Source: Mantamonas sphyraenae STR306
Lineage: Eukaryota > Protista > CRuMs
Length of the DNA stretch: 64,000 bases
NCBI GenBank assembly: GCA_026936335.1
Contig: JAPMXV010000017.1
Span: 1 to 64,000, forward strand
Reading direction: 5' to 3'
The notes under the pieces were generated by a model. That model did not search any database and was not told the DNA's origin. It was given only the letters and a program-made list of their open reading frames with translations. Positions 217 to 18,723 of the stretch are shown here, one piece after another (the first letter of the stretch is position 1; each line of letters begins with the position of its first letter). Both the position numbers and the translations under genes were made by a program.

Positions 217-475
217 GTGATTTCTGATATGGTGATTTCGGTTTAGGTCAGGTGAGTTGTGCTTGTGTTTGCTGGAGGGGTGCCTGAGTTGGGCGGTGAC
301 ATGGGGCAGTGGGCAATGGGTGGGAGTGGAAATGTCGCTGGTGAGTGGCCGTCGCCCTGCAACGCCGCGCAGTCAGCACTGCCCATCCGCCTTCAACCAA
401 AATATCACAAACACCCACAACACCCTCCACCAGTCCAACACAATCCACATACACTCCAGTACCACCACCATCACC

Positions 476-3400
476 ATGGACAAGGACTACTCGAGCACTC
501 CGAAGCAACAACACACACCCAACACCTACCCAACGTGCGTTCTGCCTTCCACTCCGTTTTCAGACTGCCCGCTTCTCCCGCTTCCAGCCTCCTCCATGCC
601 TCCGTCGCTTCCCTGCACTCCTCCCCTGCATTTCCACTTGCCCATCACCACCTCCACTGCCTTCTCTGCTCGTCTCCGATTCCCTCTCCCCTGTCACTGC
701 CCGCCCCGTTGCCAGTTTCCCGGTCTGCCAATCTCCTCCGTTTTTCCCTCTCTGCTCGTTCCAGCCTCCCTTCACCCCCACTTCTGCTCCGACGGCGTCC
801 ATCCCGCCTTGCACTCACAGTTGCCACCCCGCCCTGCCCCTCCCCATCTTCCCCACAGCTACTACATGGTCCCTCCCATGACTGCCCAGCCGTTTCCGAA
901 TACGCTGCCCGTTTCTGACGTACAAAACCCGTACCAGCACCCACAACCACCCATCATCTGGGTCCCTGTCAACACCCATTCCCAGCAGCAGCACGTATAT
1001 CCTCATCACGGCCACCCATACTACGCCTATCCTCCTCCGCCGCCTCCTCAGCCGCGACAAACCGCCCAGATGCACTTCGCTCAGCCTCCGACCCACCCTC
1101 CGCCTGCTCAACCCACCACCAACCACAACGGCGTCCCCAAACGCATCAGCCCTGCCTTTGTCGGCATCACACAGACCACGTCCACCACCACATCGTCGTC
1201 CTCCTCCTATCAGGCCACACGGCAGACTGGAGACAGCGACGACGACGACGCAGACCAGGACACACATACATATGACACCGGCGATGTGGAGGACCTGATG
1301 TTTCTGAACTTTGGCCACCGTGAACCACGGTCAATCTCCAGCAACCCAGAGTGGATGACCAGCTCACGGATGGAGGCGTTTGAAGAATACGGCGAGGCAA
1401 ACGACGCCATCCAGCAGCACGTGGACGACGAGATGGAAACTCAGGGCGCACCTAGCTTCGCAGACACTGGTGATGCCATGGATGAGGAGTACATGCCACA
1501 CGTCGACAACGACGACGACACAGACGACATGGAGCAGGAGGACACGGACGAGTGGCAGCCGAGACGCTCAAGTAGAGGTCGCACACGACGAGGAAACCAC
1601 GCCACTCGACTCACTGGTTCACACTCGATGAAAGGCAGCGGACAGCGCAGGCTCAGGGTCACCCCTGGCAGTGGCACCGAGACAGGAACGTCGAGCACAC
1701 GAGCAAGGAGTTACAAGAACGGAGACAACGGCGCACGGAAGAAAGCAGGCGTGGACAAGACGAACAAGTTGCCAGATGGTGTTGAGCGCAAAGGGTGGAC
1801 AAAGGGACCCAGTGACGAGCGCAGCCGCAGCAACAAGAAGGAGCACAGGACACTGCTGAGGCACATGCACACCCTGGCCAACGAGCATCCCATCGACGAT
1901 ATCCCCGATCTCATGACTCTGCAGGCGCGTGTTGTGGTCTGCCATGGCACCACGACCACGCTTGTCCGACAGATTCAGCTCGCTCTGGGCAGCATTCCCC
2001 TCTCCCAGGGCGACATGGCCTTCTGTCTCATCCTTCTGGGCCATGATGTGGATCAACAGGCGTGCAGTGATGCCATCCGTGTCGCTGGTCTGGCCATGGG
2101 TGTGACCAAGGCTGGGTTGAAGGTGTGCTGGCTCGAGGAGCCACACAACCACGGCGACCCCAACTACGCCCTCCTCCACCTGCTTATGACAGAGATGGAC
2201 ACTCTTGGCAACAGGCCCCATCCCACCACCTGGAAGGAGCACGAGCAGACCCAGCTGTGGCTGCAGAAAGCACGACGCCCTGCTGACAGCGACAGCGACC
2301 CACACTGGACACAATGCGACTACGACCACCACCTCACCACCACTGAGGTGGAAAAGTGGCATAACGAGTCTGTGCGCAGTGGCTGGGCAACGCACAATCC
2401 CAACGACGAGCGTGGCAGCTGCACGGCGCGGGAGTTCCAGACGCTGCTGGCACACGTGAAGGCACGCGCAGCCAAGCACCCTCGCCATCAGCACACACAC
2501 GAGCACCTTGCACTGCGTGAGCTGATCAACAACGGCAGCCTGCTGTCCCTGCTGCGCCACATCATCCTGGCGCTGGGCAACGTTGGCGTGCCGCCTGTCG
2601 ACCTGGCCTTCTTTGTCCGCCTCCTCAGGCCACACCTCACCTACCAGAAGTTACGACATGCCATCAGCGACACCCTCACTCGCGGTGTCACCTCCCTCTC
2701 CCTCAAGATCGCCTGGCTCGACAACCCCAAACCCAGCGACGCCACACTGCACACCCTCCTCCACACCCTCATCGAGCGCATCACACCCCACATCACCACC
2801 CGTCCCACCACCGTCGACGCAGTCAACACCCTCGACATCCCCGAGATTATTCTTCCTGAGCCCACGGAGGAGGATGGGTTGGTCGTGGAGGATGGACTGC
2901 CAGATGGCGTTGTTTGCAGTGGCTGGACAAACTGGCGCAAGAGCGAGCGCAGCCACAGCAACAAGAAGGAGCACACGGCACTGCTGAACCACATGCACAC
3001 CCTGGCCAATGACCATCCCATCGACGACATCCCCGACCTCATGAACCTTCAGGCACGTGTTGTGGTCTGCCATGGCACCCTGCGCACGCTGGTCAGACAG
3101 ATTCAGCTCGCTGTGGGCAACACACCCCTCTCCCAGGGCGGCATGGCCCTCTGCCTCACCCTTCTCGGCCGTGACATGGATCAACATACGTGCAGTGCTG
3201 CCATCCAGAACGCTGGTCTGGCCATGGGTATCACAAAGGCTGGGTTGAAGGTGTGCTGGCTGGAGGAGCCACACGACCACGGCGACCCCAACTACGCCCT
3301 CCTCCACCTTCTCATGACAGAGATGGACACTCTCGGCGACAGGCCCCATCCCACCACCTGGAAGGAGCACGAGCAGACCCAGCTGTGGCTGCAGAAAGCA

Positions 3401-5176
3401 CGACGCCCTGCTGACAGCGACAGCGACCCACACTGGACACAATGCGACTACGACCACCACCTCACCACCACTGAGGTGGAAAAGTGGCATAACGAGTCTG
3501 TGCGCAGTGGCTGGGCAACGCACAATCCCAACGACGAGCGTGGCAGCTGCACGGCGCGGGAGTTCCAGACGCTGCTGGCACACGTGAAGGCACGCGCAGC
3601 CAAGCACCCTCGCCATCAGCACACACACGAGCACCTTGCACTGCGTGAGCTGATCAACAACGGCAGCCTGCTGTCCCTGCTGCGCCACATCATCCTGGCG
3701 CTGGGCAACGTTGGCGTGCCGCCTGTCGACCTGGCCTTCTTTGTCCGCCTCCTCAGGCCACACCTCACCTACCAGAAGTTACGACATGCCATCAGCGACA
3801 CCCTCACTCGCGGTGTCACCTCCCTCTCCCTCAAGATCGCCTGGCTCGACAACCCCAAACCCAGCGACGCCACACTGCACACCCTCCTCCACACCCTCAT
3901 CGAGCGCATCACACCCCACATCACCACCCGTCCCACCACCGTCGACGCAGTCAACACCCTCGACATCCCCGAGATTATTCTTCCTGAGCCCACGGAGGAG
4001 GATGGGTTGGTCGTGGAGGATGGACTGCCAGATGGCGTTGTTTGCAGTGGCTGGACAAACTGGCGCAAGAGCGAGCGCAGCCACAGCAACAAGAAGGAGC
4101 ACACGGCACTGCTGAACCACATGCACACCCTGGCCAATGACCATCCCATCGACGACATCCCCGACCTCATGAACCTTCAGGCACGTGTTGTGGTCTGCCA
4201 TGGCACCCTGCGCACGCTGGTCAGACAGATTCAGCTCGCTGTGGGCAACACACCCCTCTCCCAGGGCGGCATGGCCCTCTGCCTCACCCTTCTCGGCCGT
4301 GACATGGATCAACATACGTGCAGTGCTGCCATCCAGAACGCTGGTCTGGCCATGGGTATCACAAAGGCTGGGTTGAAGGTGTGCTGGCTGGAGGAGCCAC
4401 ACGACCACGGCGACCCCAACTACGCCCTCCTCCACCTTCTCATGACAGAGATGGACACTCTCGGCGACAGGCCCCATCCCACCACCTGGAAGGAGCACGA
4501 GCAGACCCAGCTGTGGCTGCAGAAAGCACGACGCCCTGCTGACAGCGACAGCGACCCACACTGGACACAATGCGACTACGACCACCACCTCACCACCACT
4601 GAGGTGGAAAAGTGGCATAACGAGTCTGTGCGCAGTGGCTGGGCAACGCACAATCCCAACGACGAGCGTGGCAGCTGCACGGCGCGGGAGTTCCAGACGC
4701 TGCTGGCACACGTGAAGGCACGCGCAGCCAAGCACCCTCGCCATCAGCACGCACACGAGCACCAGGCACTGTGTGAGCTGATCAACAACGGCAACCTGCA
4801 GTCCCTTGTGCGACACATCATCCTGGCGCTGGGCAATGTTGGCGTGCCGCCTGTCGATCAGGCCTTCTTTGTTCGCCTCCTCCGTCCACGCCTCACCTAC
4901 AAGAAGGTTCAACAGGCCATCAGCGTCACCCTCACTCGCGGCGTCACCTCCCTCTCCCTCAAGATCGCCTGGCTCGACAACCCCAAACCCAGCGACGCCA
5001 CACTGCACACCCTCCTCCACACCCTCATCGACCGCATCACACCCCACATCACCACCCGTCCCACCACCCCCGCACTCGTCAACGCCTACCCAATCCCCCC
5101 TTTCACCCTGCCCAAGCGCAAAGACCCTTCCTCCTCGTCGTCCTCCTCCTCCTCGAAACGGCAACGCCTCGAATGA
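476..5176 (+). CDS. Subtelomeric repeat-module protein, copy 1: Pro/Gln-rich, acidic and basic disordered N-terminus, three A+B modules, C-terminal bipartite NLS-like PKRK...KRQRLE; probable intron 535-858
   Basis: Within ORF 257-5176. The ATG at 476 (MDKDYS) is shared with copy 2. gtgcgt donor at 535 and ccccacag acceptor at 858. Internal period of 1128 nt. Confidence 0.85.
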   Translation: MDKDYSSTPKQQHTPNTYPTCVLPSTPFSDCPLLPLPASSMPPSLPCTPPLHFHLPITTSTAFSARLRFPLPCHCPPRCQFPGLPISSVFPSLLVPASLHPHFCSDGVHPALHSQLPPRPAPPHLPHSYYMVPPMTAQPFPNTLPVSDVQNPYQHPQPPIIWVPVNTHSQQQHVYPHHGHPYYAYPPPPPPQPRQTAQMHFAQPPTHPPPAQPTTNHNGVPKRISPAFVGITQTTSTTTSSSSSYQATRQTGDSDDDDADQDTHTYDTGDVEDLMFLNFGHREPRSISSNPEWMTSSRMEAFEEYGEANDAIQQHVDDEMETQGAPSFADTGDAMDEEYMPHVDNDDDTDDMEQEDTDEWQPRRSSRGRTRRGNHATRLTGSHSMKGSGQRRLRVTPGSGTETGTSSTRARSYKNGDNGARKKAGVDKTNKLPDGVERKGWTKGPSDERSRSNKKEHRTLLRHMHTLANEHPIDDIPDLMTLQARVVVCHGTTTTLVRQIQLALGSIPLSQGDMAFCLILLGHDVDQQACSDAIRVAGLAMGVTKAGLKVCWLEEPHNHGDPNYALLHLLMTEMDTLGNRPHPTTWKEHEQTQLWLQKARRPADSDSDPHWTQCDYDHHLTTTEVEKWHNESVRSGWATHNPNDERGSCTAREFQTLLAHVKARAAKHPRHQHTHEHLALRELINNGSLLSLLRHIILALGNVGVPPVDLAFFVRLLRPHLTYQKLRHAISDTLTRGVTSLSLKIAWLDNPKPSDATLHTLLHTLIERITPHITTRPTTVDAVNTLDIPEIILPEPTEEDGLVVEDGLPDGVVCSGWTNWRKSERSHSNKKEHTALLNHMHTLANDHPIDDIPDLMNLQARVVVCHGTLRTLVRQIQLAVGNTPLSQGGMALCLTLLGRDMDQHTCSAAIQNAGLAMGITKAGLKVCWLEEPHDHGDPNYALLHLLMTEMDTLGDRPHPTTWKEHEQTQLWLQKARRPADSDSDPHWTQCDYDHHLTTTEVEKWHNESVRSGWATHNPNDERGSCTAREFQTLLAHVKARAAKHPRHQHTHEHLALRELINNGSLLSLLRHIILALGNVGVPPVDLAFFVRLLRPHLTYQKLRHAISDTLTRGVTSLSLKIAWLDNPKPSDATLHTLLHTLIERITPHITTRPTTVDAVNTLDIPEIILPEPTEEDGLVVEDGLPDGVVCSGWTNWRKSERSHSNKKEHTALLNHMHTLANDHPIDDIPDLMNLQARVVVCHGTLRTLVRQIQLAVGNTPLSQGGMALCLTLLGRDMDQHTCSAAIQNAGLAMGITKAGLKVCWLEEPHDHGDPNYALLHLLMTEMDTLGDRPHPTTWKEHEQTQLWLQKARRPADSDSDPHWTQCDYDHHLTTTEVEKWHNESVRSGWATHNPNDERGSCTAREFQTLLAHVKARAAKHPRHQHAHEHQALCELINNGNLQSLVRHIILALGNVGVPPVDQAFFVRLLRPRLTYKKVQQAISVTLTRGVTSLSLKIAWLDNPKPSDATLHTLLHTLIDRITPHITTRPTTPALVNAYPIPPFTLPKRKDPSSSSSSSSSKRQRLE
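2211..4750 (+). repeat. Intragenic tandem duplication, period 1128 bp (376 codons), ~2.25 apparently identical copies
   Basis: SGW codons of the B module at 2378, 3506 and 4634. 2211-3622 matches 3339-4750 with no mismatch seen by eye. Confidence 0.95.
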
Positions 5177-5210
5177 ACCACTCTTCATTCCCTCTCCCTC
5201 CCACTCACCC

Positions 5211-5394
5211 TCACCTCCCCACCCACCCAACCACCCTCTCCATCACCTCATCCGGGAGTGTCACCCACCCTTCCGACCCTCCCTTCTCCACATACGCCTC
5301 TATCCCACCACACCCAAACATCGCCTCCCCCTCTTCCCCATTCATCACCAACCCCGTCTCTTTAGCCTCGCCCCCCTGTGCACCCCACCCATCC
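5211..5394 (-). pseudogene. 3'-terminal remnant of an LRR-ankyrin-family paralog
   Basis: Minus-strand translation LVMNGEEGEAMFGCGGIEAYVEKGGSEGWVTLPDEVMERVVGWVGR* matches the C-terminus encoded at 13953-14140 (LVMNGEEREAMFACGGMEEYVEERGWEGWVTLPDEVMERVVQWVGRGG*). Confidence 0.8.
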
Positions 5395-5484
5395 GCCTTC
5401 AACCAAAGTATCACCAACTCCCACACCACCCTCCAGCTGTCCAACACAATCCACATGCACTCCAGCACCATCACCACCACCATC

Positions 5485-8400
5485 ATGGACAAGGACTACT
5501 CAGACACTCCGAAGCAACAACACACACCCAACACCTACCCAGCGTGCGTTCTGCCTTCCACTCCGTTTTCTGACTGCCCGCTTCTCCCGCTTCCTTGCCT
5601 CCTCCATGACTCCGTCGCTTCCCTGCACTCCTCCCCTGCATCTCCACTTCCCCAGCACCACCGTCGCTGCCTTCTCCGCTCTTCTCCGATCCCCTCTCCC
5701 CTGTCACTGCCCTCTCCGTTGCCAGTTTCCCCGTCTGCCAATCTCCTCCGATTTTCCCTCTCTGCTCGTTCCAGCCTCCCTTCACCCTGCTTCTGCTCTG
5801 ACGGCGTCCACACCGGCTTCCGCTCGCCGCTCCCACCCCGCCTTGCCCCTCCGCGTCTCCCCCACAGCTATGGGTACATGGTCCCTCCCATGGCTACCCA
5901 GCCGTTTCCGAACATGCTGCCCGTCCAAGGCGTACAAAACCCGTACCAGCATCCACAACCACCCATCATCTGGGTCCCTGTCAACACCCATCCTCAGCAG
6001 TACCACGCGTATGCTTCTCAGGGCCACCCATACTACGCCTACCCTCCTCCGCCGCCTCCTCAGCCGCGACAAACCGCCCAGATGCACTTCGCTCAGGCTC
6101 CGTTGCACCCTCCGCCTGCTCAACCCACAACAAACCACAACCGCGTCCCGAAACGCATCAGCCCTGCCTTTGTCGGCATCACACGGACCACATCCACCAC
6201 CACATCGTCGTCCTCCTCCCAACAGGCCACACGGCAGACTGGAGACAGCGACGACGACAACGCAGACCAGGACACACACACACATGACACCGGCGACGTG
6301 GAGGACCTGATGTTCCTGAACTTTGGCCATCGTGAACCACGGACAATCTCCAGCATCTCAGAGTGGATGACCAGCTCAGGGATGGAGGCGTACGAAGAAG
6401 ACGGCGAGGCAGACGACGCACCCCAGCAGCACGTTGAGGACGAGATGGAAACTCGGGGCTCACTCAGCAATGCAGACGCTGGTGATGCCATGGATGAGGA
6501 GTACATGCTGCAAGACGACAGCGACGACGACGCAGACGACTTGGAACAGGAGGACAAGGCCGAATGGCAGCCAAGACGCACAAGAGGAGGCCACACACAA
6601 CGACGCAGAGGCCTCAGCAGCCGCCGTACTGGTCCACAGAAGTTGAAGGGCTGCGGACAGCGCAGGCTCAGGGTCACGGCTGGCAGTGGCACCGAGACAG
6701 GAACGTCGAGCACACGGGCAAGGATGGCCAAGAACGGAGACACCGGCGCACGGAAGAACACAGGCGTGGACAAGACGAACAAGTTGCCAGATGATGTTGC
6801 GCGCAAAGGGTGGTCGATGAACTGGCGCAGTGAAGAGCGCAGCCACAGCAACAAGAAGGAGCACACGGCACTGCTGAACCACATGCACAGCCTGGCCAAC
6901 GAGCATCCCATCGACGACATCTCCGACCTCATGACCCTGCAGGCGCGTGTTCTGGTCTGCCACGGCACCCTGATCACGCTTGTCCGACAGATTCAGCTCG
7001 CTCTGGGTAACATTCCCCTTTCCCAGGGCGACATGGCACTCTGCCTCACCGTTCTCGGCCGTGAGGTGGATCAATACGCGTGCAGCGCTGCCATTCGCCA
7101 CGCTGGTCTGGCCATGGGTGTGACAAAGTCTGGGTTGAAGGTGGGCTGGCTGGAGGAGCCACACGACCACGGCGACCCCAACTACGCCCTCCTCCACCTG
7201 CTCATGACAGAGATGGACACACTCGGTGACAGACCCCATCCCATCACCTGGAAGGAGCACCAGCAGACCCAGCTGTGGCTGCAGAAAGCACGACGCCCTG
7301 CTGACAACGACAGCGACCCACACTGGACACAATGTGACTACGACCACCACCTCACCACCACCAAGGTGGACAAGTGGCAATCTGAGTCTGTGCGCAGTGG
7401 CTGGAGCTATGCTCCAACAAGCGACGAGCGTGGCAGCTGCACGGCGCGGGAGTTCCAGACGCTGCTGGTACACATGCAGACACGCGCTGCCAAGCACCCT
7501 CGCCATCAGCACACACGCGAGCACTATGCACTGCGTGAACTGATCAACAACGGCAGCCTGATGTCCCTGGTGCGTCACATCGTCCTGGCGCTGGGCAACG
7601 TTGGCGTGCCGCCTGTCGACCTGGCCTTCTTTGTCCGCCTCCTCAGACCACAGCTCACCTACCAGCAGTTCTCCCCTGCCATCAGCAAATCCCTCACCCG
7701 TGGTGTCACCTCACTCTCCCTCAAGATCGCCTGGCTCGATAACCTCAAACCCAGCGACGCCACACTGCACACCCTCCTCCACACCCTCATCGACCGCATC
7801 ACACCCCACATCACGAACCGTCCAACCACCTTCGACGCCGTCAACTTCCTCCGCATTCCCGAGCTTGTTCTGCCCGAGCCCACAGACGAGGAGAAGATGA
7901 TGGCCGTGGAGGATGGACTGCCAGATGGCGTTGTGCGCAGTGGCTGGACTCACTGGCGCAAGAGCGAGCGCAGCCACAGAAACAAGAAGGAGCACACGGC
8001 ACTGCTGAATCGCATGCACACTCTGGTCAATGAGCATCCCATGAACGACATCCGCGACCTGCTGATCCTGCAGGCGCGTGTTGTGGTCTGCCATGGCACC
8101 CTGTTGGCGCTGATCCGACAGATTCAGCTCGCTCTGGGCATCATTCCCCTCTCCCAGGGCGACATGGCCTTCTGCCTCACCCTTCTCGGCCGTGACATTG
8201 ATCAAAAGGCGTGCAGCCTTGCCATCCTCCACGCTGGTCTGGCCATGGGTGTGACAAAGGCTGGGTTGAAGGTGTGCTGGCTGGAGGAGCCACACGACCA
8301 CGGCGACCCCAACTACGCCCTCCTCCACATGCTCATGACAGAGATGGACACACTCGGCAACAGGACCCATCCCAGCACCTGGAAGGAGCACCAGCAGACC

Positions 8401-9060
8401 CAGCTGTGGCTGCAGAAAGCACGACGCCCTGCTGACAACGACAGCGACCCACACTGGACACAATGCGACTACGACCACCACCTCCCCACCACCAAGGTGG
8501 AAAAGTGGCATCCCGAGTCTCTTCGCAGTGGCTGGAGCAAATCCGGTCACGACGAGCGTGGCAGCTGCACTGCGCGGGAGTTCCAGACGCTGCTGGCACA
8601 CATGAAGGCACGCGCAGCCAAGCACCCTCGCCATCGATACGCACACGAGCACCAGGCACTGCGTGAGCTGATCAACACTGGCAGCAAGCAGTCCCTGGTG
8701 CGACACATCATCCTGGCGCTTGGCAACGTTGGTGTGCCGCCTGTCGACCTGGCCTTCTTTGTCCGCCTCCTCAGGCCAAACCATACCTACAAGCAGTTCT
8801 CCCCTGCCATCAGCGACACTCTCACTGGCGGCGTCACCTCCCTCTCCCTCAAGATCGCCTGGCTTGACAACCCCCAACCCAGCGACGCCACACTGCACAC
8901 CCTCCTCCACACCCTCATCGACCGCATTACACCCCATATCACCACCCGCCCCACCACCGTCGCACTCGTCAACGCCTACCCCATCCCCTCCTTCACCCTC
9001 CCCAAGCGCAAAGACCTTTCCTCCTCTACCTCCTCCGCCAAACGCCAGCGCCTCGAATGA
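5485..9060 (+). CDS. Subtelomeric repeat-module protein, copy 2 (two A+B modules); probable intron 5544-5867
   Basis: Within ORF 5173-9060. Colinear paralog of copy 1 with the same start context, intron signals and C-terminal PKRK...KRQRLE. Confidence 0.85.
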   Translation: MDKDYSDTPKQQHTPNTYPACVLPSTPFSDCPLLPLPCLLHDSVASLHSSPASPLPQHHRRCLLRSSPIPSPLSLPSPLPVSPSANLLRFSLSARSSLPSPCFCSDGVHTGFRSPLPPRLAPPRLPHSYGYMVPPMATQPFPNMLPVQGVQNPYQHPQPPIIWVPVNTHPQQYHAYASQGHPYYAYPPPPPPQPRQTAQMHFAQAPLHPPPAQPTTNHNRVPKRISPAFVGITRTTSTTTSSSSSQQATRQTGDSDDDNADQDTHTHDTGDVEDLMFLNFGHREPRTISSISEWMTSSGMEAYEEDGEADDAPQQHVEDEMETRGSLSNADAGDAMDEEYMLQDDSDDDADDLEQEDKAEWQPRRTRGGHTQRRRGLSSRRTGPQKLKGCGQRRLRVTAGSGTETGTSSTRARMAKNGDTGARKNTGVDKTNKLPDDVARKGWSMNWRSEERSHSNKKEHTALLNHMHSLANEHPIDDISDLMTLQARVLVCHGTLITLVRQIQLALGNIPLSQGDMALCLTVLGREVDQYACSAAIRHAGLAMGVTKSGLKVGWLEEPHDHGDPNYALLHLLMTEMDTLGDRPHPITWKEHQQTQLWLQKARRPADNDSDPHWTQCDYDHHLTTTKVDKWQSESVRSGWSYAPTSDERGSCTAREFQTLLVHMQTRAAKHPRHQHTREHYALRELINNGSLMSLVRHIVLALGNVGVPPVDLAFFVRLLRPQLTYQQFSPAISKSLTRGVTSLSLKIAWLDNLKPSDATLHTLLHTLIDRITPHITNRPTTFDAVNFLRIPELVLPEPTDEEKMMAVEDGLPDGVVRSGWTHWRKSERSHRNKKEHTALLNRMHTLVNEHPMNDIRDLLILQARVVVCHGTLLALIRQIQLALGIIPLSQGDMAFCLTLLGRDIDQKACSLAILHAGLAMGVTKAGLKVCWLEEPHDHGDPNYALLHMLMTEMDTLGNRTHPSTWKEHQQTQLWLQKARRPADNDSDPHWTQCDYDHHLPTTKVEKWHPESLRSGWSKSGHDERGSCTAREFQTLLAHMKARAAKHPRHRYAHEHQALRELINTGSKQSLVRHIILALGNVGVPPVDLAFFVRLLRPNHTYKQFSPAISDTLTGGVTSLSLKIAWLDNPQPSDATLHTLLHTLIDRITPHITTRPTTVALVNAYPIPSFTLPKRKDLSSSTSSAKRQRLE

Positions 9061-9828
9061 ATCCCCTCCTTCCTTCCGATCCACTCCATCATTTGCTGCC
9101 CTCACACATCACATTCCGTTCCCCTTCTTGGCACAGGGCCTCGCTCCGCCGCTCCGAAGCCCTTTTGCCGACCCCACAGACACCGAGGTGTTCATCTTGG
9201 ATTGTGCCCTGCTCAGCGTCGACATCGCCGTCACTTTGGTGGTGCTGCTGGTGTTGGTGTTGTTTCCGCTGTTGCTCATCACCGTCGCTACGTTGTTGTT
9301 GGTGTGTATGTCCATCCAGCACTCCTCGTCCTCGTCGTGGTCATCCGGCGCATTTGACCATGCACTGGCACCTTGCAAATGACACGCTGACGTCCTTATC
9401 ACGCTCATCACCTGACGAATGCCCCCATTCTGGACTGTGTGTGCCTTGTTGTGCCACAGGGCGCACAGAAAGTCGTCCCTGGTGCATGGGACAAGCAATG
9501 CATTACGCAGAAGCCATGGTCTCCCACACGACACACACGGTTGAATTATGTGGATGTGCGATGCATGCTGCCCCATCGCAGCCAAATGTTCGCACGCAGG
9601 GTGTCCAAGCGAGGAGGCACCTTGCTGGGCCGAACCCTTCGTACAGGCACTCCACGAGTGCGAACCACGTTGATGCACGTCACTGCCCATCATAACACGA
9701 TACATCCTCGACACGACGTGGCTGTGGGTGCCAGTTTGCATGCGGCCCGGTCGTGGCAGGGCAGGAACACGTCGTCCTCATCATCACCATGGCTCAACGG
9801 CACAGCCGCTGTCGTGCAGCGCTGCAGC

Positions 9829-12540
9829 ATGTCTACAGCCACTATCAGTGCTGAGGAGTTGTTCTTGGAGGCCAGAAGCAAGCTGAACAAGCGTGAGGAG
9901 CGCCTGGAGAGGTTGCGCGACCGTGTAGAGTCGTTGTCCGCGGAACTTGGCCAAGCTCGCGAACAGCTGCGACTGAGCCCACAAGGAGAGAAGGAGGCCG
10001 TGCAGAGTTTCGTGGATGAGAAGGAGAAGGAATTGGCAAAGGCAGAGAAGGAAGTGGTGGAGGCAAAGGTGGAAGTGGCGGAGGCAAAGGCAAAGGCGGA
10101 AGCGGCGGAGGCGAAGGCGAAAGAAGAAGCGGAAATCGAAAAAGCCATGGCGGAAGTCGAAAAAGCCGAAGCAAAAGTGAAAGAAGCCCAAGCGTTGCTG
10201 CTGGATGCAAAGAGAAAGGGGGATGAGGATGCTGTTGCGGTGTACCAACTTTGGGTGGATGACGCGAGAACGGGACAGCAGAAGGCCCAGGCGCACCATG
10301 AGCGTGAGTTCCTGACACCCACAATTCTTCGCGCCGCGCCATTTCGCTGACACCCGCCCACTCCCCACAGGCTTGTGGGAAGCAGCTGCACACATTTCGC
10401 CCCACGGTAGGTTCCAACGTTTCTTTGAGCCGTCCATGACGTCGCTGACACTCTGTGCATTGACAAACACGCAGTGGAGCGGGTGGAGCTGACGTCCGTG
10501 GAGCAATTTGCCGAATTGTTGGAGATGGAACCCTGCTTCGATCCCAGCAAGAAGAACACGCCTTTGGGAGACGTCATCGACACGGAATTGGCCATGCAAA
10601 TCCCACTTCAGAATCGGCAGGATGCACTGAAAAGCTTTCGTTTGCGCGCTGACTCCCAACTTCGCAAAATGACTCAACACCGGGGTGACACGGTTCTGTA
10701 CTCAGTAACTGGCATGTCTGGTACTGGCAAGTCGCGCATGCTGATGGAGCTGACGGAGGCTCTGCGACAAGTCACACAGGAAAAGGTACCGCATCTGCAG
10801 GTGCTGCCACTGCTTTTGACGCTGAACAATCAGAACGAGCCAGTTATTGAGAGGAGATGGGGTGATTATGGTCTGGGTGTGCGCATGCTGTACGACTACG
10901 CTGTTGACCGGGGTGACAAGGCTCGTCTCCGTGAGAAACACGTGGTGCAACTTGAGCAGTCGCTGGAATCGCTGCCAACACCCGTTGACGCAGCCGAGTT
11001 GATCGTTAAGCACGCACAGAGTCAGAACGGAGGTTCCCCTGTGCTTCTGTATCTTGGGTACGACGAAGTGCAGAAGCTGGCTGATCCATACAAGCCGAAT
11101 GGCAGGGTCAGGATGCAAGAGGTGATCAACTCGGCCACTGGCATTATCAACAGCGTCAGCAGGATCAGTGGTGTGTATAACGACCAAGAACATCCGTGTC
11201 GTGCCGTGGTTGCCGTTGCGGGCACACGGGACCTGCACCTGATGGGTGCCCTTGATCGCGAGTCGACATACCGCAACTTTCCGCTGGCTGTGCCCACACT
11301 CAGTCTCAAGGAATCCCTGGATGCTGTGCTCGGGTTTGCAAACTTGAAGCACGATGAAGACCATCGACATGAAGAACATCGGGAAAAAGACCATCCAGAT
11401 GAAGTCCGTCGACGTAAAGTCCTTCGCACTCTGCTGTTGCAAACTCTGCGGCAGCTGTACGGTGTGCCGAGAGCGGTTGAGGGGATTGCAAAGCTGTTTA
11501 AGCTGGTTCATTCCCTATCGCTGGATACCATTCAATCTGATCTTCAACGCGCTGTTCAAGAAATCAGGCATGACACGTACACAGCAAACTTCCCGGCAGA
11601 TCTGGCCAAAACGCTCACGCGGATGCACCTGTTCAAGGAGACAATTCAAATTGGTGACAAGGTTGGTGGAAACACTGTGCAAGAACACATGAGTTGTGGT
11701 TTGCTGGTCCACCACGCAGGCCAGGTGATGCCGATTCCCCTCGGTCTGCAAGGGAGTAAAGCGGCTAGCAAGAGTGAACTGCTCCGGCGCATCACCGACT
11801 TCAACGAGGTTGCATTGTGGCAACACTACGAGAAGCAATCACAATACTTTCACGTGTTGCGATCTCTCGCCCTGATCGAGAGCCCACCGGACTACGCATT
11901 GCTGGACGGCGACGAGTGGCACAACGGCGCCTTGAGCTTCAACCTGGACCACATCCAGTACTCCACAAACCTGAAAGCCAGGGTGACGATGGACCTGCAG
12001 GATTATAGGGAACGCTTCCCCGCACAAACAAAGACTGTGAAGGAGGAGGTGGCAAAATTGGTCCAGGCGAATCCGGATGGCCTGCAGACAAGCATGCAGA
12101 TGATGAATGGGACCAACGCACCGTTTGCAGATGTCATAGTTGTCCATCCCGCAGTCGACGGGGTGGTGGTTGAGTGCATCCAGTGCAAGTTCAGCGAGCA
12201 TGGGATTCACGCAAGCGACAAGGTGAGCCTTACACTGATCAAAAACGAGTACGAGAAAGTGATGCAGCATCAGGAGGTTGTCCGTGAGACGTTTCAGCCG
12301 CTGGCAGGCGAGAATGGCAAGGTACACATTGTGTTTGGCTTCACGAGCGTCAAGGGCCCGAAACCCGAACTGGAAGAGCAGCTGAAGGAGTGGACGAAGG
12401 AAGGAGAGAAACAGGTGTATGTGGTGCATGGTCAGAACCACACTGAGTACTACGGTGGTCTCTTGGAATCGATGATGATGATCACCGATGACAACGACGA
12501 GTCCAAAGTGCAGGAAGGCCAAGAAACCTCGGACAAGTGA
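9829..12540 (+). CDS. Crinkler/RHS-like protein: coiled-coil header, P-loop NTPase, C-terminal PD-(D/E)xK-type REase; introns 10304-10370 and 10407-10474
   Basis: Two GT-AG introns with gctgac branch sites join ORFs 9439-10350 and 10474-12540 in frame. Walker A GMSGTGKS, Walker B LYLGYDE, REase-like NAPFADV...IQCK. Confidence 0.75.
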
Positions 12541-12623
12541 CAGTGTGCAGGCATCAATGCAACACACGCAGACACACATTCATGGTTGCATTCCTTCCCA
12601 ATTGCACATTGATCCGAAGGCAT

Positions 12624-13933
12624 CGACGCCACACTGTACACCCTCCTGCACACCCTCATCGACCGCATCACCCCCCACATCACCACACGCCCCACCACCG
12701 TCGACGCCGTCAACACCCTCGACATCCCCGAGCTTATTCTTCCTGAGCCCACTGAGGAGGAGAAGATGGCCGTGGAGGATGGAGTGCCAGATGGCGTTGT
12801 GCGCAGTGGCTGGTCAAGTTGGCGCAAGAGCGAGCGCATGCACAGCAACAAGAAAGAGCACACGGCACTGCTGAAGCACATGCACACTCTGGCCAACGAG
12901 TATCCCCTCGACGACATCCCCGACCTCATGAACCTGCAGGCGCGTGTTGTCGTCTGCCATTTCACCCTGACCACGCTGGTCCGACAGATTCAGCTCGCTC
13001 TGGGCAACATTCCCCTCTCCCAGGGCGACATGGCCTTCTTCCTCACCCTTCTCGGCCGTCACATGGATCAAAAGGCATGCAGCCTTGCCATCAACTACGC
13101 CGCTCTGGCCATGGGTGTGACAGAGGCTGGGTTGAAGGTGTGTTGGCTGGAGGGGCCACACGACCACGGCGACCCCAACTACGCCCTACTCCACCTGCTT
13201 ATGACAGAGATGGACACTCTGGGTGCCAGGCCCCATTCCACCACCTGGAAGGAGCACAAGCAGACCCAGCTGTGGCTGCAGAAGGCACGACACCCTGCTG
13301 ACAACGACAGCGACCCACACTGGACACAATGTGGCTACGACCACCACCTCACCACCGCCATGGTGGATCAATGGCATCCTGAGTCTGTGCGCAGTGGCTG
13401 GGCAAGGCACAATACCAGAGAGGAGCGTGGCAGCTGCACGGCACGGGAGTTCCAGACGCTGCTGACACACATGAAGGCACGCGCAGCCAAGCACCCTCGC
13501 CCTCAGCACACACACGAGAATCAGGCACTGCGTGAGCTGATCAACAACGGCGACCTGAGTTCCCTTGTGCGACACATCATCCTGGCGCTGGGCAACGTTG
13601 GCGTGCCGCGACCTGGCCTTCTTTGTCCGCCTTTCTTAGGCCACACTTCACCTACAAGCAGGTTCAACTTGCGATCACCAATATCCTCACCCGCGGCGTC
13701 ACCTCCCTCTCCCTCAAGATCGCCTGGCTCGACAAACCCAAACCCAGCGACGCCACACTGCACACCCTCCTCCACACCCTCATCGACCGCATCACACCCC
13801 ACATCACCACACGCCCTACCACCAACGCACTCGTGAACGCCTACCCCATCCCCTCCTTCACCCTCCCCAAGCGCAAAGACCGTTCCTCCTCCTCCTCCTC
13901 CTCCTCCTCCTCAAACGCCAACGCCTCGAATGA
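12624..13933 (+). pseudogene. Subtelomeric repeat-module family, copy 3: 5'-truncated and frameshifted
   Basis: Homology starts mid-B-module (cgacgccacactg) ~80 bp after the CRN-like stop. Carries a 5-nt deletion at ~13608 (gccgc|gacc vs gccgcctgtcgacc) and further 1-nt indels at ~13632 and ~13912. Confidence 0.85.
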
Positions 13934-13952: not shown

Positions 13953-15675
13953 TCACCCACCCCTCCCCACCCACTGCACCACCCTCTCCATCACCTCATC
14001 CGGCAGTGTCACCCATCCTTCCCACCCTCTCTCCTCCACATACTCCTCCATCCCTCCACACGCAAACATCGCCTCCCTCTCCTCCCCGTTCATCACCAAC
14101 GCCACTTCCATCGCCTCATCCACCTGTCCACCCCATCCAATCCAATGCCACGCCTTCCTCCACCCTGCCTCCCTCACCATGTCCTCCGTTTCCATCCTCG
14201 GCTTGGCACCCCACGCCCTCAACACCTCACACCACCCTCTCATCCCTTCCCTTCACAGCTCTCTCCAGCGCCGTCTCCTTCCCTTCATCCCCTGCAAACG
14301 TGTCCACAGGCACACCCCACTCCCTCAACTCTCTCATCTTCTCCACATCTCCACACTCCACAAACTCCTCGTGCTGCTTCATGTTTCTCTCCAACAGTGA
14401 CTGTAACGCGTCATCGCGAACGCCGTGGATTTTCCAGCAAGAGTGATTGCCATTCATCGCCTGAGCAAGTGCTGCGGCACCTTCGTCCCCGATGCGGTCG
14501 TACTCGAGGTTCAATGTCTGCAAGCTGCTGTTCTCACTCAGCGCCTGCGCCACTGCTGTTGCTCCTTCCGCTCCGATCATGTTCTTGCTGAGGCCTAATG
14601 AGTGCAAGCTGGTGTTCACACTCAATGCCTGCGCCAGTGATGCTGCACCTTCGTCGCCGATGCTGTTCCAGCCGAGGTCCAGTGTCTGCACGCTGCTGTT
14701 TTCACTCAGTACCCGCCCCAACGCTGTTGCTCCTTCTGCCCCGATGCTGGTTCCCACCAGATCCAGTTTCTGCAAGCTGCACTTCACACTCAGTGCCTGC
14801 GCCAGTGCTGTTGCTCCTTCGTCCCCGAATTTGTTGCTGCTGAGGTGCAGTGTCTGCAAGCTCCTGTTCTCACATAGTGCCTGCGCCAGTGCTGTTGCTC
14901 CTTCTGCCCCGATAATGTTGTCTCTGAGGTCCAGTTGCCGCAAGCTGCTGTTCTCACTCAATCCCTGCGTCAGTGTTGCTGCACCTTCTGCCCCGATGCT
15001 GTTGCTGTTGAGGCGCAGTGTCTGCAAGCTGCTGTTCTTCCTCAGTGCCAGCCCAAGTGCTGCTGCTCCTTCTGCCCCGATGCTGTTGAGGCTGAGAATC
15101 AGTGTCTGCAAGCTGAAGTTTTCACACAGCCCCTGCCCCAGTGCTGCTGCACCATCGTCTCCGATGCCGTTTCCCCAAAGATCCAGTGTCTGCAAGCTGC
15201 TGTTTGCACTCAGTGCCTGCCCCAGTGCTGTTGCTCCTTCGTCCCCGAACTTTGTTGTAGCGGAGGTCCAGTGTCTGCAGTCTGCTGTTCTTCCTCAATG
15301 CCAGCCCAAGTGCTGCTCCTCCATTTGCACCGATTCTGTTGCTCCTGAGGTTCAGACTCTGCAAGCGACCCCTGCTGTCCTCACTCAGTGCCCGCGCAAG
15401 TGCCTGTGCTTCTTTTTCTCCCAGACCAACGGAAGCAAGGTCCAATTCCTGTGTACAACGTGTCAACACACGTTCCACTCTTCCTACACACCATCACACC
15501 CACCCTACACGCATCCCTCCTTCCCTTCCCCTTGTGCGACGCACGTCACGCTCAGCAACTCCCTCCCGATATCTTTCCGCAACCTCACCGTTCCCTGAGC
15601 TTCCAAAGCTTCAACAATCCGCCCATGGTCTCGGCTCTGCAACAATTCCAGCCATTCACGTTGTCCCAAGCCCAT
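13953..15675 (-). CDS. RI/NLRC3-type LRR array + ankyrin-like repeat + C-terminal LPxE motif protein; frameshifted in this assembly, start uncertain, possibly a pseudogene
   Basis: ~11 28-aa repeats LQTLxLxxNxIGxEGAxAL (ORFs 14227-15195 and 15122-15478), then GDVEKMREL...GKETALERAVKG-RMRGWCEVLRAWGA and VTLPDEVMERVVQW. 1-nt shifts at ~15251 and ~14245. Confidence 0.7.
14460..15365 (-). repeat. 84-bp tandem coding repeats (LRR units)
   Basis: Recurrent gtctgcaagctgctgtt...ctcagtgcctgc...gctccttc motif at 84-nt spacing. Confidence 0.9.
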
Positions 15676-15966: not shown

Positions 15967-17211
15967 TCACTTCTTGGCGCCCCCACGGTAAAACAACGGC
16001 ACCATGCTGATTGCAATCGCCGCAATCGCCAACGTCGGCCGGTACCGCACCCACGCCAATGCAATCACAATCACGCTCAGCGACAGTGAAATCACAAAGT
16101 TGACAATGCTCACACCCACCGACGCCACGGTGCTCAGGATCGGCACCCAGTCCACAAGCGTGTGCACAATCTGCGTGATCATGCTCAGGCCCAGCCACAT
16201 CAACAGCCATCCCAGGAAGCGGAACAGCCACGTCTGCATGCTGTTTGCGCTCAACGCGTTCTCAAACAGCTTCTCTGCGCTGTGCTTGCCCGTCTGGATC
16301 ATGCTCACCTCCTTGCCGCTCTGCTTGTCTGTCGCACGCGTCAGCTTGTCCGGCACCTGCAGACCAGCCACCAGGCTCACCACAGTCACCTCGTTGCCAT
16401 TCGTCACATAGCCTTGCTCGTCTGCCTCTGCCTGGTCTCCCGAGCTGCCCACCAAAAAGAACCGCACCCGCACATCGCCCACACGTGGACGAGACTCGTG
16501 CTTCGATGTGCTCACTCCCATCCGGTCGCTGTCCAGATGCAGCCCGTTCTTGGCCATCACCTTGGCGTACTTGTCGCTGAACCGCAGCTGCACCTTGTCG
16601 TCCACCTGCCGCCACAGCCGCGAGTCCACCTCGTACTCACCCACGCTCGCTCCTTCCGCCTCAAACTCCTTGTCTGCGTACGGTGCACTGCTCGGGTTTT
16701 CGTGGTCCCGCGGTTCCCGGAAGCGGCTCGAGTCTTCCACACCCGAGTGCCAACCTTTCGAGTAGCTGTACGTCTTTTCCACCCGCGTGTTCTCTCCCTC
16801 GTTGATTCTCGTCTCGCTCACCTTTTCCTTCCACTGGTACATTTCCACACGTCGCAGCAGCCGCAGCCCCGACGCACGTACATGGAACGTCCGATCGTGC
16901 AGCACCCCGCTCGACCTGATCGCCCCCGTCACATGCACCAGGTCTCCAGCACGCAGGTTCAAGGCTGCGTTGTCTGCCACACGTGGCTGGATCCCCACTG
17001 TGTTTGCACTTGCGTGCAGAAGCGCTGCTTCCGTAGCCACCGCGTTGCCCTCGTTGAACCACAGCGCCGGAAACGCCGCGCTGAAAAGCAGAAGGCCAAA
17101 CACCATCCCGCACAGGCTATCTCCCACTCGCTCCAAGTATCCTGGGTTTCGCACATACGACACGTCTGTCACAGAGTCTCGTGCGCCTCCGAATCGTCGT
17201 CGTGTTGCCAT
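15967..17211 (-). CDS. TMEM43: TMEM43 (DUF1625) family membrane protein
   Basis: [39 protein letters not shown] and AWVRYRP motifs; 1+3 TM layout. Confidence 0.9.
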
Positions 17212-17310
17212 CTTTTGCACTGGTCGCAACCCCCCTTTTTTTCGTGTTGTTTGCGTCAGCGCGTGTCATCCACTTCCGCCCCACCCTTCCCATCGCAATC
17301 CACACCCGCC

Positions 17311-18723
17311 ATGTCCACACGCGTTGAAAAAGACTCCATGGGAGAGATCCAAGTGCCCAGTGACAAGATGTATGGCGCACAGACCCAACGAAGTCTCGAG
17401 AACTTCCGAATCGCACGCGAGTACGACGTCATGCCCATTGACGTCGTCCATGCTCTTGCCACCCTCAAACTGGCCGCTGCACGTGTCAACATGCTCAACG
17501 GCCAGCTGGACAAGTCCATCGGCGACGCCATCGTCACGGCTGCCCAAGAGGTCATTGACGGCGATTTTGACGACCACTTTCCGCTTGTCGTCTGGCAAAC
17601 CGGCAGTGGCACCCAAAGCAACATGAATGTCAACGAAGTGATTGCCAACCGTGCCTCTGTGCTTCTCGGTGGCCAGCCCGGCACCAAAGACCCCGTCCAC
17701 CCCAACGACCACGTCAACCGCGGCCAGTCGTCCAACGACAGCTTCCCCACGGCCATGCACATTGCCACCGCCTGTTCCACCACAACACGTCTCCTTCCTG
17801 CACTCGTCCAGCTCACCAGCACCCTCAGTGCAAAGGCCAGCGCCTTTGACGGAATCGTAAAGATTGGCCGCACCCACCTCCAGGACGCCACGCCCATCAC
17901 CCTCGGCCAAGAGTTTAGTGGCTACGTGGCCCAACTGGAACAATGCCAGTCTCGCATTGAAACTGCTCTCGACGAGCTGTATGCCCTTGCCCAGGGAGGC
18001 ACCGCCGTCGGCACAGGCCTCAACAGCTTTGAAGGCTTCGACACGGCTGTGGCTGAAGAGATCAGTCTCCACACGGGCCTTCCCTTCCGTACAGCCGACA
18101 ACAAGTTTGCTGCCCTCGCTGCCCACGACGCCATGGTCAACTTTTCCGGCGCCCTCAACACGCTTGCCGTCGCCCTCATGAAGGTGGCCAACGACATCCG
18201 CATGCTGGCCAGTGGTCCCCGCTGTGGGTTGGGTGAGATCAGTCTCCCGGAGAACGAGCCAGGCAGCAGCATCATGCCGGGCAAGGTCAACCCGACCCAA
18301 TGCGAAGCCGTCACCATGGTCTGCGCCCAGGTCATGGGCAACCACACCGCCGTCACTGTAGCTGGATCCACGGGCCACTTTGAGCTCAATGTCTTCAAGC
18401 CTGTCATTGTGCGCAATGTCCTCCACTCCATCGCCCTCCTCGGCGACGTCATGCTCAGCTTCGACACAAACTGCGCCTCGGGAATCACAGCCAATGAGGA
18501 TCGCATCGACAGCCTGCTCCACCAGTCGCTCATGCTCGTCACAGCCCTCAACCCACACATTGGCTACGACCGAGCTGCAGAGACTGCCAAGAAGGCCTTT
18601 AAGGAAAACACCAGCCTCAAGGAGGCTGCCCATGCACTGGGTTATGTCGACCAAGACGACTACGACAACCTGGTCAACCCACAGGCCATGACAAAGCCCT
18701 TCAAGCTGAACGACGACGAGTAA
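17311..18723 (+). CDS. FH: Class II fumarate hydratase
   Basis: [37 protein letters not shown] and the signature [15 protein letters not shown]. Confidence 0.98.

Follow-up and report, generated by a model that had tools for sequence, protein, structure and literature searches.

The window (the whole stretch analysed, 64,000 nucleotides from one end of contig C17 of Mantamonas sphyraenae) begins with telomere repeats, directly behind which lies an array of modular genes (Table 1). Gene 1 has a disordered N-terminus, three A-B module pairs and a nuclear localisation signal (NLS)-like tail. Its N-terminal region runs from a Pro/Gln/His/Tyr-rich segment through a Ser/Thr run and an acidic tract to a basic Arg-rich tract, and its tail follows the general form KRK-(9-22 aa)-KRQR found in nearly all copies read. 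Gene 2 has a close copy on another contig (C71, L002). The third copy retains one A module, one B module with two frameshifts near 13610 and 13637, and the NLS-like tail. Judged from their sequences, the segments 535-858 and 5544-5867 very probably represent introns, so that the encoded proteins would be of the lengths listed in Table 1; over eight copies, indels of 1 nt are confined to the predicted intron and those of 3 nt to the exons, and the intron is kept in all eight. Exons were joined solely for the reading-frame check; the database queries were open frames.

Table 1. Features of the telomere-abutting array at the left end of contig C17.
Feature	Position	Strand	Remarks
Telomere repeats (CCCTAA)n, left end of contig C17	1-216		36 TTAGGG-type repeats
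Telomere junction and 5' region	217-475	+	Identity 91-94% at the other ends scored
Gene 1	476-5176	+	Exon 1 476-534, exon 2 859-5176; ~1458 aa
Predicted intron, gene 1	535-858	+	GTGCGT...CACAG; 324 nt; sequence-inferred
N-terminal low-complexity region, gene 1	859-1768	+	From composition
Module A1, gene 1	1769-2260	+	
Module B1, gene 1	2354-2827	+	
Perfect tandem duplication, 1128 nt	2211-4750	+	2211-3622 = 3339-4750
Module B3, gene 1	4610-5092	+	Folded (model m55379399ea15)
Bipartite NLS-like tail, gene 1	5111-5173	+	KRK, poly-Ser spacer, KRQRLE
Gene 2	5485-9060	+	Predicted intron 5544-5867; ~1083 aa; two A-B pairs
Last A module, gene 2	7915-8409	+	Folded (model m33ba49b4ad3e)
Patch 1, last A module of gene 2	7948-7968	+	After GW, in unmodelled N-terminal arm
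Predicted HTH-like three-helix core, last A module of gene 2	8095-8265	+	Model residues 61-117
Patch 2, same core	~8101-8109	+	Caps helix 1 in the model
Helix 3 (patch 3), candidate recognition helix, same module	8203-8232	+	Variable residues 98, 101, 102, 105, 106
Third copy	12621-13933	+	5'-truncated; begins in the end of a B module

Modules A and B are each ~150 aa long and share ~30% identity and 15 invariant columns. The sequence-only reading of this locus had described six modules of each kind, with a 376-aa period and linked to the telomere, and all are present: A modules at 1790, 2918, 4046, 6805, 7939 and 12805, and B modules at 2378, 3506, 4634, 7396, 8527 and 13393, all on the forward strand, with a module-pair period of 1128 nt. 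Only five A and five B modules are distinct, however, because of the perfect duplication in gene 1, a recent, base-for-base event that leaves B1 identical to B2 and A2 to A3; the same reading had also overlooked the N-terminal intron and the broken state of the third copy. The Pro/Gln-rich, acidic N-terminus and the bipartite NLS-like motif that it described are both there.

A search of the M. sphyraenae genome (25.06 Mb, 78 contigs) returned ~163 gene-start motifs and 338 B motifs, with none in the controls. Among contigs 1-26, 49 of the 52 ends carry a family member. Every family gene points inward, away from the telomere; at the telomere junction the start codon lies ~260-340 nt from the repeats. 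Sequence was read at 30 loci of this genome, the later genome searches supplying coordinates. The genes often form 3.9-kb head-to-tail tandems and usually encode two A-B units (four modules) per protein; frames are broken in 5 of 29 loci, and the inner copies include truncated or broken ones. We conclude that this is a Mantamonas-specific family of ~160 genes that supplies the first gene or genes inside nearly every telomere. No relative was found in a profile search of 1.84 billion protein representatives, in viral, metagenome or prokaryotic contigs, in a length-limited word-based protein search with a 361-aa unit, or in a feature search of the ESM Atlas. Pfam, PHROGs and PDB sequences likewise gave no match, whether to any HTH family profile or, with confidence, to a known non-recognition domain, and no transposase, reverse transcriptase, helicase, NTPase motif or nuclease was found in the unit. 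We found no earlier description in the literature of a telomere-abutting A-B family. In the M. sphyraenae genome paper, repeats are mostly unclassified and were masked ahead of gene prediction (PMC10492846), which may explain why the family proteins are absent from the databases searched.

A sample from other chromosome ends (54 modules of type A, 55 of type B) bears out the three short variable patches proposed from the locus. In that sample the mean entropy of patches compared with scaffold is 1.57 against 0.34 bits for A (p=4e-9) and 1.77 against 0.29 bits for B (p=8e-11), and the patches contain 10 of the 12 most variable columns in A and 11 of 12 in B. The variable face is rich in Gln, Asn, Ser, Lys, His, Arg and Asp and nearly devoid of aromatic residues and Glu. 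Patch 1 of module A does vary, but this is partly a fixed difference between the first and last modules within a gene, W-R being present in 28/28 last modules and in 6/28 upstream ones.

The scaffold is under purifying selection, with pN/pS of 0.33 in A and 0.40 in B, whereas patch pN is 0.34-0.38, compared with 0.12-0.17 for scaffold pS and 0.093 for the intron. For patches 2 and 3 together, 126 fourfold sites served as the neutral reference: of 48 first and second codon positions, 19 lie above its 95th percentile and 11 above its highest value (out of sample; Fisher p=1.7e-7). Entropy along helix 3 is periodic, with its peak at 100 degrees for module A (p=2e-4) and at 90 degrees for module B (p=0.002), and the buried codons interleaved with the variable ones stay quiet. 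One helix face thus carries above-neutral diversity. Within patches 1 and 3 dN/dS is only ~1, since synonymous diversity is raised there too, and a minimum-step codon network did not yield dN/dS>1 inside the patches; this method is conservative and saturates, so we relied on the fourfold-site comparison instead. Linkage (r2) falls to background by ~100 nt, the patches are mutually unlinked, and patch combinations are unique in 59/59 and 60/60 modules; there is fine-scale recombination between non-allelic copies. The variation is thus neither scattered nor neutral, and the earlier description of a subtelomerically diversifying family is borne out by diversifying selection on the patches and by shuffling between copies.

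AlphaFold models of the two modules, built from shallow alignments, are of modest quality, with mean pLDDT values of 58 (A) and 62 (B) and cores at ~70. Model A places helices at residues 63-74, 81-90 and 97-106, as a three-helix bundle with a helix2-turn-helix3 arrangement. Nearly all of its best 50 fold matches are HTH or winged-helix domains, aligned on residues 60-117, and further searches with the A core again gave such matches. Superposition on the ArgR-DNA structure gives Z6.8 (rmsd 2.6 Å, 51 residues aligned), a middling score in a range that the tool calls common, and on sigma-54 Z6.6 (rmsd 2.0 Å, 52 residues). Model B has the same helices, but its scores do not exceed Z4.8 and its matches are mixed. 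Foldseek searches of the PDB and of a viral library (BFVD) gave no significant match. Each module is predicted to hold an HTH-like three-helix core. In the models, patch 3 makes up a single face of helix 3, the recognition-type helix, and helix 1 has patch 2 as its cap; patch 1 lies in an N-terminal arm with pLDDT<50.

HHalign comparison with five ArgR sequences also places helix2-turn-helix3 in the register of the structural match (P=0.004, probability 8%). Module A shares with ArgR an SQ-D/E start to helix 2, the Gly of the turn and a Gln in helix 3, and in the HHalign register, at that same 8% probability, variable columns 102/103 fall on the ArgR SR motif, mutation of which abolishes DNA binding (PMC5291005). 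A single E. coli ArgR sequence gave no match to the A/B profile, and in gapless scans with BLOSUM profiles neither ArgR nor RpoN scored significantly in the expected register. Residues 110-129 (pLDDT<50) are drawn as helix in both models, neither of which has a beta-wing; by eye the spacing after helix 3 fits the ArgR wing, the score not being significant. The fold matches extend over no more of ArgR than its DNA-binding part, and the C-terminal arginine-binding hexamerisation domain of ArgR is absent here.

A module of this kind might read proteins instead of DNA. As diversified sensors, A and B would use the variable face to recognise proteins inside the nucleus, whether foreign or self, such as viral proteins or incompatibility or mating partners. 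Consistent with this, module A is net acidic (13 Lys/Arg against 17 Asp/Glu) with few basic residues in its core, Leu, Ile, Pro and Val are frequent at the variable sites, and the fold matches include protein-binding winged helices (the Stn1 C-terminus, cullin WHB and ScpB); selection and shuffling suit any recognition system. Patches 2 and 3, however, are nearly without the aromatic residues typical of protein-binding surfaces, the variation in both A and B falls at canonical DNA-reading positions (helix 3 and the helix-1 cap), and A retains the residues shared with ArgR. We consider protein sensing unlikely.

We think it quite improbable that the family is a selfish telomere-linked element, spread by recombination, whose protein gives an advantage to the chromosome end that encodes it, by drive or by competition among ends, and whose patches diversify in conflict between copies. 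Strict abutment and polarity with a conserved junction, 3.9-kb head-to-tail arrays with degraded inner copies and the lack of detectable relatives all fit such an element, and its compatibility with DNA binding makes it overlap our preferred explanation. Yet neither a transposase nor a reverse transcriptase, helicase or nuclease is encoded in the unit, and the junction, which would be the obvious target within the element itself, does not vary but is conserved. A constant protein for telomere maintenance or capping, binding TTAGGG and tolerating variation, is highly improbable: if the target never changed, the recognition helix should be conserved, and this helix is the most variable part, above neutral. 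Presence at nearly every end, the Stn1 C-terminus among the fold matches and the HTH folds of telomere proteins would fit capping, but gene position says nothing about the binding site. Relaxed constraint, a local mutator or assembly error, for which the raised synonymous diversity in patch codons, the difficulty of polishing paralogous ends and the broken frames might speak, is already largely refuted and barely credible, as neutral drift and a regional mutator are rejected by patch positions that exceed fourfold sites and by codon-by-codon helical periodicity in two modules only 30% identical, and assembly error would be neither in-frame nor position-specific.

We therefore favour, as the probable explanation, a telomere-shuffled repertoire of variable-specificity candidate DNA binders. 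The encoded proteins are probably nuclear. Helix 3 would be placed in the DNA major groove, where the bases read would be set by its five variable residues together with patch 2 at the helix-1 cap and perhaps patch 1 in the GW arm; four modules together could recognise a composite site of sufficient length to be unique. The disordered N-terminus may recruit partners that activate or silence, the patches would be reshuffled as short-tract gene conversion acts from one chromosome end to another, and selection would maintain many alleles. The most likely driver would be a conflict in which the DNA targets (viruses, transposons or competing selfish elements) keep changing, by analogy with KRAB zinc fingers; this is the weakest step, with about even chances within the favoured explanation. 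HTH folds also bind proteins, a point that we count against a DNA-reading function, as we do the modest models and fold scores, the blank HTH profile searches, the acidic charge of module A, the lack of a modelled wing and the dN/dS of ~1 within patches 1 and 3.

If the binding is true, the family represents an independently evolved, diversifying repertoire of DNA readers in a lineage that lies close to the base of Amorphea and for which, to our knowledge, no transcription or defence biology has been described. The family would then show that an HTH scaffold can serve to rebuild the KRAB-zinc-finger strategy, with telomeric recombination as the driving process, and several hundred natural variants differing at about ten positions would provide a training set for the HTH recognition code, which has so far been hard to obtain. 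More tentatively, the modules may constitute a third natural re-targetable scaffold for modular DNA recognition beside zinc fingers and TALEs, HTH-like, present as >300 telomeric A-B units continually recombined into new specificities, with natural variants sufficient for a residue-to-base code. Even without DNA binding, a single family that caps almost every end and is under focal diversifying selection is unusual.

Polarised, telomere-abutting arrays that spread among ends are known from HeT-A/TART, Athena, yeast Y' and the fungal telomere-linked helicases. The Mantamonas arrays are likewise polarised and abut telomere repeats at many ends, but the unit has no reverse transcriptase or Gag ORF, no poly(A) and no terminal repeat, and its intron is retained, so that it is not a retroelement; lacking a RecQ or DEAD-type helicase ORF, it is not a telomere-linked helicase or Y' element either. 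Comparison with ArgR (PF01316) and sigma-54 RpoN shows that the predicted bundle of three helices fits theirs with 51-56 residues aligned at 2.0-2.6 Å. Unlike these proteins, the Mantamonas module has no significant sequence match and no modelled wing, its core lies inside four extra helices, A and B stand in tandem in one chain, and the candidate recognition helix is hypervariable instead of conserved; the family is not assigned to the ArgR/sigma-54 type of HTH domain.

The TLO genes of Candida albicans are a telomere-associated, functionally diversified expansion of a nuclear regulator (Med2) in 10-15 copies (PMC4214616, PMC5908203). The Mantamonas family is also telomere-associated and diversified but has ~160 copies, a predicted DNA-binding-type fold and focal hypervariability, whereas TLO is a Mediator subunit; identity with TLO is rejected, as Pfam gave no Med2 domain match. 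DUX4 in D4Z4 is also encoded in subtelomeric units, a few kb long and arranged head to tail, each with tandem HTH-class domains, but its homeodomains are homogeneous and occupy few ends, whereas the Mantamonas copies differ at the putative reading face and occupy nearly all ends. TAL effectors combine a modular scaffold of 33-35-aa repeats, each with a two-residue RVD as its few variable residues, with an acidic region and an NLS near the C-terminus. No such repeat occurs here, and the Mantamonas gene is eukaryotic, with an intron and no secretion signal seen, its product probably acting in its own nucleus. The analogy with TALEs and zinc-finger arrays drawn by the sequence-only reading therefore stands as a working logic, although the module is ~150 aa long, usually four occur per protein and no code is established. 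In KRAB/C2H2 zinc-finger arrays and PRDM9, tandem modules of fixed scaffold undergo recombination and selection on one helix face behind an N-terminal effector. The Mantamonas family is no zinc-finger array, its period being 376 aa, with no 28-aa C2H2 repeat and no KRAB or SET match in Pfam; built from an unrelated helical module, about four per protein, with one locus per end, it nevertheless shows the same diversifying selection on one face of a predicted recognition helix in tandem modules.

The left edge of the window (positions 1-216) carries 36 telomere repeats, inward of which lie two long forward-strand frames and then a partial third copy. A motif scan recovers, at a 1128-nt period, the six A and six B modules that the sequence-only reading had described, these being the two homologous ~150-aa parts of each 376-aa unit; they share about 30% identity and 15 invariant columns. 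That module set is real but needs four amendments. Only five A and five B modules are distinct, because 2211-3622 recurs base for base at 3339-4750; the third copy is broken; patch 1 of A, the first of three short variable stretches per module, is in part a marker of module position; and each gene very likely has an intron near its start. The predicted intron ends (GTGCGT donor, CACAG acceptor) are unchanged in all eight copies compared, with 1-nt indels confined to the intron and 3-nt indels to the flanking sequence. With it spliced out, all eight copies keep an open frame; left unspliced, five run into stops.

Features at the left end of contig 17
Feature	Position	Strand	Remarks
Gene 1	476-5176	+	
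Intron, gene 1	535-858	+	Very likely; predicted from sequence; Pro/Cys/Leu-rich stretch near start
Gene 2	5485-9060	+	
Intron, gene 2	5544-5867	+	Very likely; predicted from sequence
Coiled-coil ORF	9439-10350	+	Ala/Glu/Lys-rich; directly upstream of NTPase gene
688-aa protein (NTPase) gene	10474-12540	+	P-loop; weak AAA_16 match
Third copy	12621-13933	+	5' part missing; two frameshifts within B
Leucine-rich repeat gene	14227-15414	-	28-aa ribonuclease-inhibitor-type repeats; 84-nt period
First ordinary housekeeping genes	15967-18723	-, +	TMEM43-like ORF (-), class II fumarase-like ORF (+); by eye

Inward, the subtelomere extends as far as the housekeeping genes. Within it, the 688-aa protein has a C-terminal D...QxK nuclease-like motif (by eye) and presumably resembles the Crinkler/RHS-type proteins that join an NTPase to a restriction endonuclease, a lead only; a search for its homologues found none. 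Its gene occurs about 10 times genome-wide, each time close to an end and next to the family. The coiled-coil ORF is possibly its first exon or header, and the same block lies downstream of family genes at three other ends (L012, L016, L024); similar leucine-rich repeat genes come after the family at L021, L027 and L030. Further in, the window contains a direct duplication (31978-34594 and 42814-45438; 87% over 1.65 kb and 98% over 410 nt).

The published genome of Mantamonas sphyraenae comprises 25.06 Mb in 78 primary contigs, with telomeres at both ends of 59 and at one end of 14 (PMC10492846). In a protein search, the assembly used here (25,061,354 bases, 78 contigs, TTAGGG ends) yields 113 units besides the query, at 82-91% identity to it and none with an internal stop. 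By pattern matching there are 163 gene starts and 338 B modules, or about two units to a gene; control patterns matched nothing. Among the matches listed, all those on the forward strand lie less than 14 kb from a contig start; reverse-strand matches are grouped at far contig ends, and at the right ends of contigs 1-3 the start codon and the telomere array lie about 270-340 nt apart. Counted by hand, members occur at 49 of the 52 ends of contigs 1-26, as expected of the telomere-linked family first proposed. The telomere junction and first exon are 91-94% identical among the ends scored. Head-to-tail gene arrays occur at a spacing of about 3.9 kb, and in the innermost copies similarity stops shortly past the stop codon, where no poly(A) was found. 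The frame is open from the acidic region through the tail at 24 of 29 loci, and the bipartite NLS-like motif reported earlier is present nearly universally among the loci read, as KRK-(9-22 aa)-KRQR.

On contig 29 (assembly G000:C29:94643-95722, reverse strand) a member lies within a 3224-aa open frame and probably has many more A-B units than usual. The copy at the left end of contig 73 (L013, G000:C73) has two successive identical A modules, a very recent unit duplication like that in gene 1. Gene 2 (window:5388-9077) has a near-identical partner at the right end of contig 71 (L002, G000:C71), with no protein difference in either A module, which points to a recent exchange between ends that are not homologous.

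The sample for variation comprises 59 A and 60 B modules, all distinct, from 30 loci, 29 of them beyond the window; these loci are the best matches to one query and under-sample more divergent copies. With the window copies excluded, mean entropy is 1.57 (A) and 1.77 (B) bits in the patches against 0.34 and 0.29 in the scaffold, the rest of the module. Purifying selection acts on the scaffold (pN/pS 0.33 in A, 0.40 in B). Patch pN is 0.34-0.38, 2-3 times scaffold pS and about 4 times intron divergence. Within patches pN/pS is 4-5 for patch 2 and close to 1 in patches 1 and 3, where it is no higher because patch codons also show raised synonymous diversity, as would be expected if old alleles were protected from homogenisation. 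A cleaner test takes 126 fourfold sites of these genes as the neutral reference: of the 48 first and second codon positions in patches 2 and 3, 19 lie above the 95th percentile of those sites and 11 above their maximum (p=1.7e-7). In patch 3, variable columns are interleaved with near-invariant ones at helical periodicity, peaking at 100 degrees in A (p=2e-4) and 90 degrees in B (p=0.002), a pattern that neither a regional mutator nor errors of assembly would generate. Informative sites lose their linkage over short distances, reaching background by about 100 nt; the patches are mutually uncorrelated, and their combination is unique to each module. Short-tract gene conversion between non-allelic ends would explain this most simply. 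Concentration of variation in three patches, their diversification and shuffling between copies, as first read from the window, hold in the larger sample.

No sequence relatives of the A/B domain were found in Pfam, PHROGs, PDB sequences, 1.84 billion protein representatives or viral, metagenome and prokaryotic contigs, nor by a length-limited word-based protein search with the 361-aa unit or a feature search of the ESM Atlas. AlphaFold2 models from joint A/B alignments (the last A module of gene 2; the B3 module of gene 1) are all-helical, with the same helices, and modest (mean pLDDT 58.5 for A and 62.0 for B, cores about 70), the N-terminal 22 residues and 110-125 being unreliable. An exhaustive structural search with model A returns HTH or winged-helix domains, aligned to its residues 60-117, in almost every one of the top 50 rows; among them are ArgR in complex with operator DNA (Z 6.8, rmsd 2.6, 51 aligned), sigma-54 (Z 6.6, rmsd 2.0, 52 aligned), Hop2, AhrC, Fur and MecI. 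Atlas and second-look searches concur. Model B gives a mixed list (best Z 4.8), although winged helices again account for the rows on 60-117. These Z values are middling, and Foldseek with the models against PDB and viral structure libraries gave no significant match. The data back a core of three helices in the modules, but no wing is modelled.

A weak profile alignment to five ArgR sequences (probability 8%, P=0.004), made without the model, returns the same helix 2-turn-helix 3 register, with matches at SQ-D/E where helix 2 begins, at the Gly of the turn and at the Gln that opens helix 3. It places variable columns 99, 102, 103, 106 and 107 on E. coli ArgR S44, S47, R48, T51 and K52; the SR motif is required for ArgR DNA binding (PMC5291005). 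From the structural register and this alignment, therefore, patch 3 is predicted to form the outer face of a recognition-type helix and patch 2 to cap helix 1. In HTH and winged-helix domains this cap points at the DNA backbone. Patch 1 falls in the low-confidence N-terminal arm of model A. The A/B domain is probably a distant member of the HTH superfamily.

With location, polarity, open frames, selection and shuffling observed in the copies and HTH-like cores predicted in the modules, we favour, with some reserve, variable-specificity DNA binding. The four cores of a protein would read a composite DNA site, the NLS-like tail would bring the protein into the nucleus and the Pro/Gln-rich and acidic N-terminus may draw in cofactors; recombination at chromosome ends would supply novel readers, which a conflict with shifting DNA targets would preserve. 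Modules B are basic; modules A are net acidic, with few basic residues in the core, which counts against DNA binding. Recognition of protein ligands by the modules is the strongest alternative, although an unlikely one. A selfish end-linked element, which overlaps with the DNA-binding reading, is less likely still, and a constant telomere protein is very improbable. Neutral variation or artefact is equally hard to credit, given that patches 2 and 3 exceed fourfold sites and patch 3 keeps helical periodicity.

Literature searches found no published description of the family. In placement it resembles the Candida TLO genes, D4Z4/DUX4 and telomeric elements, with which it has no domain in common. 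Its working logic, although the family falls outside all three groups by their membership tests, is like that of KRAB zinc-finger arrays, PRDM9 and TALEs.
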